A DNA stretch of 39,399 nucleotides from sequence record KX467643.1; one strand, given 5' to 3'. Shown here piece by piece: positions 1 through 39,399 of the stretch. Position numbers and translations under genes: made by a program. Position 1 is the first letter of the stretch, and each line of letters begins with the position of its first letter. Below the pieces are notes generated by a model. The model was not told the DNA's origin. It saw only the letters and a list, made by a program, of their open reading frames with translations, and did not search any database.

Positions 1-459
1 TATCTATATAATATAAGAGAGAAATTGTATAAGTCGTATTTCATACAATTACGTCGTATAACGTATTAGACACGGATACGTCTTATATCTTATAAGACAT
101 TGATATGTCTTATATCTTATACGTATTTCTTACGTCTTATATTCGTACTTCTTACCCCTTACTTCTTTCCTCTTATATTATATAGATATATTCAATACCC
201 CCTATATTCGTTCTTCTTTGAATTTTTCTCGTACCACTTACTTCATATTTGTTATATCATTCTCCTTGCTTCACTCATTCGTTCCCCGTTCGTCCTTTCT
301 TCACTCCTCTTTCTTAACTCGTACTTTCCCTTTCTTAATTCGTCCTTACTACTTACGCCATTCTGAATACTACACTCATTCGTTCTCGTTTTTAACTCGT
401 CTTTTCTCGTTCGTTTTCGTTCGTCTTACTTCACTCGTTCTTTTTTTATTTTCCGTTTT
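1..459. repeat. Left inverted terminal repeat (459 bp)
   Basis: 1-459 matches the reverse complement of 38941-39399 in the stretches compared; identity stops after ...TTTTCCGTTTT at 459. Typical of linear lipothrixvirus/rudivirus genomes. Confidence 0.95.
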
Positions 460-15291: not shown

Positions 15292-15687
15292 TCATTCTTC
15301 CTCTTCAGCCTCTTCGTCAAGAAACTTTTTTAGTTTCTTTTTATTCTTTTTCTTTAACGGCTCTATTTGTACATCTTGTGATTGTTGTGCTTGTTTCTGT
15401 TGCATAAATTGTTGAGCTAGCATCATTTGCAACCAATTACCGTTTCCTTCACCCCCTGGTCTTATTATTCCCGATTGGGTAAGTAGCTGAACCATTTCAT
15501 TAATATGAGTGATAGCAATTTTAACATCTTCCAAAGTCCATTGACCTTTCAAGTGATTATCTAAGATGGACGCAACAGTTTTGACTGCCTGCTTTGTCTT
15601 TTCAAGCTGTTCTTGTAATTCCTGTACTTTCTTTTCTAGTTCTTCTATCTTCTTATTGACGTCTTGTTCGGGCTTTTGCTCACTCAT
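15292..15687 (-). CDS. Coiled-coil protein, 131 aa, Gln-rich with basic/acidic tail
   Basis: Heptads KKIEELEKKVQELQEQLEK; coupled to the upstream gene. Confidence 0.85.
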   Translation of the reverse strand: MSEQKPEQDVNKKIEELEKKVQELQEQLEKTKQAVKTVASILDNHLKGQWTLEDVKIAITHINEMVQLLTQSGIIRPGGEGNGNWLQMMLAQQFMQQKQAQQSQDVQIEPLKKKNKKKLKKFLDEEAEEEE

Positions 15688-16216
15688 CTTTCAACACTTC
15701 CTCAACGTTTTTTACTACGCTTTCGTTCTTAGAGTTTCTTGAGTAAATTACTGTATAAGCGTACTTGTCGTCATTTCCAAATTTGACACGTAAATTTCTC
15801 ATGTGGTTCCCCGCTCTAGCTTTTGTTTCCTGTAATGTTTTTTCTAATATTCTGATAATTACATCGTTTAGTGATACCATTATTACTGCGTCACCATCAT
15901 CAGTAACATAAGCACCTGCATCTATCCCGAACTTTTTGAGTTTTGATAGAATTTTCGAGTTCACTTCTCTCAAGTCCTCATCAACGAGTTCTTTCATTCC
16001 AACGAGAAATAATTTTCCGTCCTTGATTTTCATATTCCATAGTTCTTTGTTTATTTCAGCAGTTATCTTTTCAGCAAAATGTTTATATTTTACTGCAACT
16101 AATGCAGTTTTTTCATTTATTGCCCCGGCAACAGGGTCTATTTCCATCTTCTTCAGCGATTCCGTGAATACTTTAAATACGTAAGCTACACTACCTTGCA
16201 ATCTTACTTTTTGCAT
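15680..16216 (-). CDS. Hypothetical protein, 178 aa
   Basis: Clean ORF downstream of MCP1. Confidence 0.85.
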   Translation of the reverse strand: MQKVRLQGSVAYVFKVFTESLKKMEIDPVAGAINEKTALVAVKYKHFAEKITAEINKELWNMKIKDGKLFLVGMKELVDEDLREVNSKILSKLKKFGIDAGAYVTDDGDAVIMVSLNDVIIRILEKTLQETKARAGNHMRNLRVKFGNDDKYAYTVIYSRNSKNESVVKNVEEVLKDE

Positions 16217-16248: not shown

Positions 16249-16752
16249 TTACTTCTTAACTAGTTTGAACAATGCGTCTTCAATCTCGGTTAAAACTTTA
16301 GACATATCAACAGTTACAGGTTTCCCATCTTTCCTTACAAACGTGTAGAGGAAACCACTAGTGACACCTAATCCCGCACCTGATTGTCTTTGCATTAATT
16401 CCCATAAGAAGTTATGATGTATTTCCACAAGTGGTTCGCCCTTATAATCTAATATATAGTTCGCTAGTACTTTCTCAGCAAATGCCATTAATAATCCCTG
16501 ATATGCTCCTGGTATATTATATTTTCCTGAGATTTGTTTGACTACCTCTTTTGCCAAGTGTGATGGTGCATAATCCGTAACCCAATTGTAGGTTTCTTGT
16601 TCGCTGAGCCTCGCGATGGCTCTCATTATTTCTGGGTTTCCTGCAACGAATGCACCATTAACGTGTCCTGCAGTACCTATGTTCATTGAAAACCTCTTTA
16701 GATAGTATCTGTATACAGATGCGGAACTTAATCTCCTATTTCTCCTCGCCAC
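16249..16752 (-). CDS. mcp1: Major capsid protein 1 (betalipothrixvirus, SIRV2-type helical fold)
   Basis: MARRNRRLSSASVYRYYLKRF..., 167 aa; matches SIFV MCP1 as recalled; GTG start with GAGGTGGTGA RBS. Confidence 0.92.
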   Translation of the reverse strand: MARRNRRLSSASVYRYYLKRFSMNIGTAGHVNGAFVAGNPEIMRAIARLSEQETYNWVTDYAPSHLAKEVVKQISGKYNIPGAYQGLLMAFAEKVLANYILDYKGEPLVEIHHNFLWELMQRQSGAGLGVTSGFLYTFVRKDGKPVTVDMSKVLTEIEDALFKLVKK

Positions 16753-16755
16753 CTT

Positions 16756-16860
16756 TCACCACCTCATAATGGTTTTTTTTGAGGGAATTTCCATTGTGAT
16801 TACCTTTAAATAATGGTTATATGTGGAAACAGATTTTAATTTTATGTTCCTTGCCACCAT
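16756..16860 (-). CDS. Unannotated 34-aa ORF similar to the MCP1 N-terminal arm
   Basis: MVARNIKLKSVSTYNHYLKVITMEIPSKKTIMRW; ATG overlaps the MCP2 stop (TAATG); stop lies in the MCP1 RBS. Confidence 0.55.
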   Translation of the reverse strand: MVARNIKLKSVSTYNHYLKVITMEIPSKKTIMRW

Positions 16861-17474
16861 TATAACCCCCTCTCAATATCCTCTAATGCTTTATAAGCAC
16901 TCTCCATTGAACTGAACGTACCAGTACCCGCATAATGCGGTGTAACCGTCGGTACCTTGGTTTTCATTAATACACCAGCGTAACTGTTGGGTAATGCAGG
17001 CATACTTGTTACGATGTTGTCAACTGTTTGTACTACATTAGTTGGGTCTAAAGTTACTGAACCGATTTGCTCTGCAACTGCTGGTACAAGTTCCTTCAAT
17101 TGATTCCCGACTTCCGCAAGTAACGTTTTCACAGTCATAGCAGGCACACCTCTAGCCACATATTTTGTAACAAGGAATGAAGCAGTTTCTTTATGTGTCA
17201 AGTATACGGCGTATATAGCCTCATTGACTAATTGCCATAATGGAAATGTGGCACCTGCACCGGCTAATTTCACAAGAGTAGGTCTTAGTGCATTGTGCAT
17301 TTTATTGTATATTTCAACGAACACGTCATTGTAGTTACTATACATATTCTCTACTAATTGTTGTGCGTACTTCTCACCCATGTAGTTCACGAAGATTCCG
17401 TAGAGCTTACCTTTATACCTAGTTGATGTATCGTTCCTTACATCGATTTTCTTATGTGATTGTCTACCCGCCAT
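16860..17474 (-). CDS. mcp2: Major capsid protein 2 (betalipothrixvirus)
   Basis: MAGRQSHKKIDVRNDTSTRYKGKLY..., 204 aa; matches SIFV/AFV3 MCP2 as recalled. Confidence 0.92.
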   Translation of the reverse strand: MAGRQSHKKIDVRNDTSTRYKGKLYGIFVNYMGEKYAQQLVENMYSNYNDVFVEIYNKMHNALRPTLVKLAGAGATFPLWQLVNEAIYAVYLTHKETASFLVTKYVARGVPAMTVKTLLAEVGNQLKELVPAVAEQIGSVTLDPTNVVQTVDNIVTSMPALPNSYAGVLMKTKVPTVTPHYAGTGTFSSMESAYKALEDIERGL

Positions 17475-17536: not shown

Positions 17537-17806
17537 ATGCAACTCACTAAAACGCAGTTTGTCCGTTGTGTGTTTCTTCTTTTAGCTAACTCCAAAAAGT
17601 ATTCCATTCCCCAAGCTGTCAGAATCTCTTACAGACTATTAGATAAAACAAGAGTAAGTCTAAGAACGAAAGAGAGACTATTAGTATTGTTAGATGCACT
17701 TGAAAGCGGAAAGATTACGCCTAGAGAGTTCACAAAAAGGCTTTTCCTTGAATATCCTAAACCATCAGATAAAGTCAAAGTATTAAGCCTTAAGATATTC
17801 GAATGA
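17537..17806 (+). CDS. Basic hypothetical protein, 89 aa
   Basis: Divergent from mcp2; promoter GAAAAATATATAAATA near 17501-17516. Confidence 0.75.
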
Positions 17807-18007
17807 GTAACATCCCTCTTTGAATAAGTCCTCAAGTTGTTTTGGAATGTAAAGGCATTTCCTTTTTGCCGTTCTTATACACTTTAGTCCTACAATTTTT
17901 CCCTCAACGATAATAGGATAAACACGACCTTCGTCAAAATTATCTTCAAGTTGCTTTGGGATATAAAGCACCTTTTTGTTACCTATTTCTCTAAGGCACA
18001 AGCTCAC
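17783..18007 (-). CDS. Internally duplicated AbrB/MazE-like (swapped-hairpin) protein, about 74 aa
   Basis: [16 protein letters not shown] and [16 protein letters not shown]; likely start GTG 18007, overlapping the upstream stop. Confidence 0.7.
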
Positions 18008-38940: not shown

Positions 38941-39399
38941 AAAACGGAAAATAAAAAAAGAACGAGTGAAGTAAGACGAACGAAAACGAACGAGAAAAGA
39001 CGAGTTAAAAACGAGAACGAATGAGTGTAGTATTCAGAATGGCGTAAGTAGTAAGGACGAATTAAGAAAGGGAAAGTACGAGTTAAGAAAGAGGAGTGAA
39101 GAAAGGACGAACGGGGAACGAATGAGTGAAGCAAGGAGAATGATATAACAAATATGAAGTAAGTGGTACGAGAAAAATTCAAAGAAGAACGAATATAGGG
39201 GGTATTGAATATATCTATATAATATAAGAGGAAAGAAGTAAGGGGTAAGAAGTACGAATATAAGACGTAAGAAATACGTATAAGATATAAGACATATCAA
39301 TGTCTTATAAGATATAAGACGTATCCGTGTCTAATACGTTATACGACGTAATTGTATGAAATACGACTTATACAATTTCTCTCTTATATTATATAGATA
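38941..39399. repeat. Right inverted terminal repeat (459 bp)
   Basis: Reverse complement of 1-459. Confidence 0.95.

Follow-up and report, generated by a model that had tools for sequence, protein, structure and literature searches.

A 34-codon open reading frame between the two major capsid genes of Sulfolobus islandicus filamentous virus 2 is probably a recombination scar

The capsid gene junction of SIFV2

We analyzed the genome of SIFV2 (Sulfolobus islandicus filamentous virus 2; KX467643), which is complete in the window of 39,399 nts. This virus, whose host is an archaeon, has been described as lytic and as not extensively characterized (PMC11065993). Its genome carries terminal inverted repeats of approximately 105 nts (positions 16..120 and 39280..39384), which are ~83% common to both termini of SIFV. 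The two major capsid protein genes lie next to each other on the minus strand. Structures have been solved for the capsid proteins of SIFV (PDB 6WQ2) and of a second betalipothrixvirus (7TXJ), and the names MCP1 and MCP2 are swapped between them: the 204-aa protein is MCP1 in 6WQ2 and in Pfam PF25654, and MCP2 in 7TXJ. The first-pass annotation of this region had named the two genes as in 7TXJ, which is opposite to the usage of 6WQ2 and PF25654. Because the names are used both ways, a trap for annotation transfer, both capsid proteins are designated by their length in this study.

The upstream gene, gp32 (16860..17474), encodes the 204-aa capsid protein (PF25654, E-value 2.6e-126; 'MCP1' of 6WQ2). 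Its stop codon is TAA in SIFV2 and TGA in every relative examined. The downstream gene (16249..16752) encodes the 167-aa capsid protein from a GTG start codon at 16752; PDB 6WQ2 chain A aligns with its residues 1-167, and PF21660 (MCP_C) matches residues 3-164 with 271.7 bits. In GenBank, this gene is annotated as gp31 at 16249..16686 only (145 aa), beginning at an internal ATG at 16686, so the annotated product is without the 22-residue basic N-terminal arm. SIFV0035, AFV9 ORF167, 6WQ2 chain A, PF21660 and 77 homologous loci agree on the GTG, and the Shine-Dalgarno (SD) sequence upstream of it is conserved as well. These comparisons show the true start of gp31 to be GTG 16752 (167 aa) rather than ATG 16686, and the annotation, which starts 22 codons too late, is corrected accordingly.

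Between the two genes lies an ORF of 34 codons (16756..16860, minus strand), encoding MVARNIKLKSVSTYNHYLKVITMEIPSKKTIMRW, in frame with the 167-aa gene, with TGA-AAG between the two. The minus-strand sequence of the region is ..gagagggggttaTAATGgtggcaagg..ccattaTGAggtggTGAaagGTGgcgagg... No gene is annotated here: the GenBank record carries no annotation between 16687 and 16859. The ATG of the ORF (16860-16858) overlaps the stop codon of gp32 in the sequence TAATG (16858..16862), in which a single base (16860) is common to both codons, and its TGA (16758-16756) lies 3 nts ahead of the GTG start, within TGAGGTGGTGA (16756..16766), the SD sequence of the 167-aa gene. The core of this SD sequence, TGAGGTG, is invariant in all junctions examined. 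Two TGA triplets are present in TGAGGTGGTGA: the first (16766-16764) occupies the position of the gp32 stop in all relatives, and the second terminates the mini-ORF. Both the start overlap and the stop within the SD sequence are thus present as originally described. The further statement that the ORF exactly fills the intergenic gap is correct with the GTG start at 16752 and does not hold for the GenBank start at 16686. The heptamer GAGGGGG, which had been pointed out ahead of the ORF, is indeed found immediately upstream of the ATG; it is not independent evidence of a ribosome-binding site, since it is the coding sequence of the conserved gp32 C-terminus (..ERGL) and a close counterpart in SIFV, AGAGGG, is followed by no ORF. 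Stop/start overlaps of 1 or 4 nts also occur in at least seven annotated SIFV2 gene pairs (gp46/47, gp50/51, gp63/64, gp34/35, gp47/48, gp57/58 and gp68/69).

An insertion carrying a diverged copy of the capsid arm

To examine the junction in related viruses, we surveyed betalipothrixvirus loci from isolates, IMG/VR, JGI metagenomes and Logan (L005-L013, L019-L090, L098 and L099). In more than 80 other junctions, the gap between the capsid genes is 11 nts and the upstream stop codon lies inside TGAGGTG. SIFV, AFV9 and AFV8 have the arrangement ..TTA TGA GGTGGTGAAAG GTG.., and the compact junction was also observed in AFV3, AFV6, AFV7, three metagenomic viral genomes from IMG/VR, each of the 66 JGI metagenome contigs in which the 5' end of the 167-aa gene is covered, and two Logan contigs, which are the closest protein relatives after SIFV. 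Embedding of the 204-aa gene's stop in the SD sequence of the next gene is a strikingly rigid feature, and SIFV2 alone breaks the pattern. The first-pass annotation had proposed looking for an intact ORF in SIFV and AFV3/6/7/8/9, with a disrupted one counting against its reading; the outcome is negative, and as strongly as it could be, since the sequence is altogether absent from these viruses and from ~75 further metagenomic junctions.

The difference is an insertion of 96 nts (16770..16865, minus strand), which SIFV2 alone carries and which SIFV and all the other relatives lack. Both of its edges have TTAT, so that its placement is ambiguous by 4 nts (16766..16865). Most of the insertion, 72 nts at 16786..16857, corresponds in diverged form to codons 1-3 and 5-25 of the gene for the 167-aa capsid protein; this part is hereafter called the stranded copy. 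It is preceded by a shortened leader, with TAATG standing where TGAGGTGGTGAAAG is found otherwise, and followed by a 16-nt filler, CCCTCAAAAAAAACCA (16770..16785), for which no homology to the arm or to any other sequence was detected; compared by eye with the continuation of the arm, it is alike at about 4 of 16 positions. The filler carries a run of eight A (T8 on the plus strand). Identity of the stranded copy is 69% with the SIFV arm and 61% with the arm resident in SIFV2, and it does not exceed 65% with any of 75 other arms. When SIFV2 was compared with SIFV by BLAST, SIFV positions 17782-17873 aligned twice, once with the 5' end of the resident 167-aa gene and once from 16786 onward, as would be expected of a gene duplicated in part. 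We considered and rejected a simple recent tandem duplication, since identity between the two copies is only 61%, the leader has been shortened by 9 nts, a codon is absent and 16 nts are unrelated.

The similarity extends to the encoded peptide. Its first 25 residues align ungapped with the N-terminal arm of the 167-aa protein at 12/25 identities (M, R, N, L, S, S, Y, YLK, M, I), exactly as had been noticed at first reading. This value was never attained in 200,000 shuffles of the peptide (maximum 10), and when the whole genome was translated in six frames, no other non-self 25-mer came as close as the arm (11 identities; next best 8); the similarity is therefore not due to chance. An HMM built from 39 distinct arms matched the peptide with 14.5 bits. 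Homology stops at residue 25, after which unrelated filler follows, and the 34-codon ORF is without the C-terminal helical-bundle domain of the PF21660 capsid family, whose members have about 165 aa in total. Scanning of the 34-aa peptide against Pfam at E ≤ 10 returned no family, and the best PHROGs hit (E = 0.11) was a family of unknown function, which was disregarded.

Database searches likewise identified no counterpart of the ORF. Tblastn and blastn against 50,697 phage and archaeal virus records gave the self match and chance matches only; a degenerate back-translated pattern of STYNHYLKVITMEI matched nothing in IMG/VR or in 185,579 genomes; and in an exact-sequence look-up the peptide was not on record. 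A phmmer search against 1.84 billion protein representatives gave two matches, neither of them a likely relative: one is a protein with a fivefold repeat and a chance similarity (..CYNHYLQLVT..), and the other a 2976-aa protein without a reported aligned stretch. An exact look-up of gp32 returned the GenBank record only, which is the sole SIFV2 sequence record, and hence there is no independent assembly of this virus.

The first-pass annotation had suggested that the ORF might encode a third, truncated capsid paralogue that caps or nucleates the nucleocapsid. This proposal is not borne out by the residues that the peptide retains. Besides the start, 11 positions are invariant among the 39 distinct arms from 77 loci (R6, R7, L8, S9, A11, S12, R15, Y16, K19, R20 and N24), and the peptide keeps three of them (L8, S12 and K19). 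The other eight (R6, R7, S9, A11, R15, Y16, R20 and N24) are replaced by I, K, K, V, N, H, V and E, respectively, so that four of the five invariant arginines are lost, and over the 24 aligned codons the net charge falls from +6 in the arm to +3 in the stranded copy. The arms of the SIFV capsid are reportedly described in the 2020 SIFV structure paper as covering A-form DNA. In AFV1 and SIRV2, the capsid N-terminal regions cover A-form DNA in a positively charged cleft (PMC5517147). Genuine homology to such an arm, a basic composition (seven K/R versus one E in 34 aa), a TAATG overlap through which the ORF is probably translatable, and a slight excess of retained residues (see below) would all suit an arm-only peptide that binds DNA in virions or that nucleates or caps the nucleoprotein helix. 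However, the ORF is missing from all relatives, neither Pfam nor the other searches provided a homologue, the whole helical-bundle domain is lacking together with the eight residues named above, and the ORF lies exactly at a recombination breakpoint. We therefore regard a functional mini-capsid paralogue as very unlikely. The peptide is homologous to the capsid arm but has none of the other features that define the capsid family. The alternative that the note had offered, a duplication relic, is essentially right.

The substitution pattern of the stranded copy may reflect relaxed constraint. Compared with the SIFV arm (Nei-Gojobori, NG86), it has a dN of 0.355, a dS of 0.71 and an omega of about 0.5, a value based on 24 codons only. 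For the real arms, omega is 0.007 between SIFV and SIFV2, 0.04-0.13 in other informative comparisons, and 0.33 for the more distant AFV8 arm. In a neutral simulation, in which 22 random substitutions were placed on the SIFV arm, 32% of the copies were free of stop codons; an open frame is therefore unremarkable. The observed copy has 14 of 24 residues matching the arm in a gapped alignment, against 10.7 +/- 1.6 in the copies that stayed open in the neutral simulation (P = 0.045), which is at most a faint trace of residual constraint. At the nucleotide level, 22 of 72 positions differ from the SIFV arm, approximately 2-3 times as many as neutral drift since the SIFV/SIFV2 split would produce (Poisson P about 0.002), with the expectation taken from the dS of 0.25-0.5 between the SIFV and SIFV2 capsid genes. 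Since the divergence exceeds this expectation, the copy may predate the split or originate in a third lineage outside the sampled ones; alternatively, inaccurate copying during formation of the joint, or diversifying selection, may account for the difference. A foreign functional arm taken from a sampled lineage was rejected, as no arm in the 77 loci exceeds 69% identity and the invariant residues are broken.

In a more far-reaching reading, the stranded arm would be strongly translated as part of the capsid operon and would have been co-opted as a small basic peptide that binds viral DNA or the capsid heterodimer, for example at the filament ends or in nucleation, with its faster-than-neutral divergence reflecting adaptation to that role; this we consider very unlikely. 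If it were true, a new virion component would have been born from a recombination scar.

The insertion was also examined for regulatory signals. Folding of the spacer RNA is no more stable than that of shuffled sequences (z = -0.30), and a scan with bacterial-type promoter and terminator models, which are not appropriate for archaea, found nothing above shuffles. A TATA-like hexamer, TTTAAA (16805..16810), lies ~55 nts before the GTG, a plausible distance for an internal archaeal promoter that would transcribe the 167-aa gene independently. However, this hexamer is inherited from the YYLK codons of the arm, SIFV has the same TATTTAAA within its coding sequence, and such hexamers are common in the AT-rich SIFV2 genome; a promoter here is accordingly the least probable of the explanations considered, and an extremely unlikely one.

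A switch of parental type at the junction

Comparison with the closest relatives revealed that the 5' end of the resident 167-aa gene has another parentage than its surroundings. A patch at 16642..16747 (minus strand) is closest to L098 (Logan contig SRR28178316_844183), an unannotated contig of 1820 bp from a betalipothrixvirus lineage without an isolate. The 167-aa protein encoded by this contig is 87% identical to that of SIFV2, and the contig is the closest sampled relative of the patch donor. Codons 1-38 of the SIFV2 gene are 89.5% identical to L098 versus 78.9% to SIFV, and codons 39-125 are 96.2% identical to SIFV versus 77.8% to L098. The patch spans ~110 nts, with flanks that are 96% SIFV-like.

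The boundaries were located by means of informative sites, that is, positions at which SIFV and L098 differ and at which SIFV2 can be scored as either type. In the last 444 nts of the 204-aa gene, up to the last sense codon, SIFV2 is SIFV-type at 83 of 87 decided sites and L098-type at four. Within the 167-aa gene, 20 of the 28 decided sites from +5 to +110 are L098-type and eight are SIFV-type, and from +123 SIFV2 is SIFV-type again; the switch is significant (Fisher P = 8e-12). The left breakpoint falls between 16863 and 16747, an interval that holds the whole insertion, and the right breakpoint between 16642 and 16629. The stranded copy was scored in the same manner at sites where the SIFV and resident arms differ: it is SIFV-type at eight and resident-type at two (binomial P = 0.055). 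Because eight of these ten informative sites are SIFV-type, the stranded copy is probably the recipient's original arm. L098 itself has the compact junction, so the donor lineage, as far as it has been sampled, lacks the duplication.

A parental switch of this kind could also be produced by assembly from a mixed virus population, in which case the SIFV2 record would be chimeric and the insertion would exist in no single genome; that only one record carries the insertion accords with this. However, a chimera of two canonical junctions would not yield a third arm that is 31-39% diverged together with a 16-nt filler, the flanking frames, SD sequence and starts are all intact, and similarly clustered differences from SIFV occur in a neighboring gene too. 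We consider such an assembly artefact very unlikely, slightly more so than the mini-capsid reading.

Proposed origin and comparison with known systems

Taken together, we interpret the 34-codon ORF as most likely the scar of a recombination event, or a partial duplicate in decay, rather than a hidden third capsid protein, because it is a mutated leftover of the start of the adjacent gene and occurs in no other related virus. In the scenario that we propose, the first ~38 codons of the 167-aa gene in a SIFV-like ancestor of SIFV2 would have been replaced by DNA from another betalipothrixvirus, whose lineage would be close to Logan contig SRR28178316_844183, the imported piece being ~110 nts long. 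The right-hand crossover, at about codon 38, would have been homologous and the left-hand joint unequal or illegitimate: the incoming piece, beginning at the ..TTA-TGAGGTGGTGAAAG-GTG junction of the donor, may have been joined behind approximately codon 25 of the recipient gene with 16 nts of filler, leaving the recipient's original first 25 codons stranded between the capsid genes. Having lost its strong ribosome-binding site and its function as an arm, the stranded copy would then have drifted, and its frame would still be open largely by descent and chance. The insertion would have been tolerated because the downstream 167-aa gene has its own perfect SD sequence (TGAGGTGGTGA) and GTG start.

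The 34-aa basic peptide may nonetheless be made passively by termination-reinitiation, which is plausible because its ATG overlaps the stop codon of a very highly expressed gene and because 1- and 4-nt overlaps join at least seven SIFV2 gene pairs. Ribosomes finishing the ORF would stop 3 nts before the capsid start, and translation of the spacer would be harmless or mildly helpful. The peptide itself most likely does not work as a protein at all.

Some features of the locus count against a scar: besides the excess divergence and the faint trace of residual constraint, the clean TAATG overlap and a stop 3 nts before the next start would look like a relay ORF kept by selection. A translational relay was also among the options of the first-pass annotation. 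In such a relay, the sequence of the peptide would be irrelevant and the open frame would preserve translational coupling and the protection of the mRNA by ribosomes; this we judge unlikely, though less so than any other alternative to the scar. That the relay should have replaced the stop-inside-SD coupling of the relatives, holding the two capsid proteins near 1:1, is unlikely to the same degree. The stop codon embedded in the downstream SD sequence in every one of more than 80 relatives suggests that coupling matters, the ORF bridges what would otherwise be a 107-nt gap from the upstream stop to the SD sequence, stop/start overlaps of 1 and 4 nts are common in the SIFV2 genome, and a near-neutral omega is just what a relay would be expected to have. 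However, the downstream gene does not need coupling for initiation, as its perfect SD sequence and its own start are intact; a third of the neutral copies are open anyway; GAGGGGG is only a partial SD match and is accounted for by gp32 coding; and the frame is represented by the single SIFV2 genome on record.

The probable recombination scar may be set beside several known systems. Its features recall the gene-fragment relics that arise by unequal or illegitimate crossover, as partial tandem duplications, at recombination joints in mosaic viral genomes: the insertion is missing from all relatives and has homology to the 5' end of the neighboring gene, and the ORF lies at a parental breakpoint, has filler and TTAT microhomology at its edges, and may be under relaxed constraint. 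Unlike simple relics of this type, its copy has diverged beyond drift and remains an intact ORF that starts on the upstream stop. The SIFV2 ORF nevertheless fits this known category. With the betalipothrixvirus 167-aa capsid arm (PF21660; 6WQ2 and 7TXJ chain A), it has in common a start-anchored similarity over 25 residues, but the peptide is without the helical bundle, has lost eight of the 11 invariant residues and half of the charge, is missed by the Pfam model, and is conserved in no other virus. It also resembles the coupled TAATG/ATGA junctions of archaeal and viral operons in that its start overlaps the upstream stop, with co-transcription assumed from gene order; in contrast to coupled genes, the capsid gene downstream has its own perfect SD sequence, and translation of the ORF is putative. 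Finally, it ends in the ribosome-binding region of the next gene, as do small upstream or leader ORFs with a regulatory effect on the following cistron, whereas its spacer contains no predicted attenuator or RNA structure (z = -0.3), it is not conserved, and its duplication origin is evident.

If this origin is correct, the locus would represent a dated, well-resolved unequal crossover within the operon that is most conserved in these viruses, and one for which a donor-like as well as a recipient-like sequence can be identified. The locus also shows that an otherwise invariant stop-inside-SD junction can be split by ~100 nts in a lab-propagated virus, which bears on how the two capsid proteins stay balanced.

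More generally, the analysis points to the ORF being an ordinary by-product of frequent recombination among filamentous viruses of hot springs. In long collinear blocks, SIFV2 and SIFV have an overall identity of 84-88%, and their differences are strongly clustered in patches, a distribution that suggests many short recombination or gene-conversion tracts genome-wide. In gp30 (15680..16216, minus strand), codons 51-75 and 126-150 hold 29 of the 37 differences from SIFV, and near the 3' end of the 167-aa gene, nts 482-491 (16261..16270) are L098-type.
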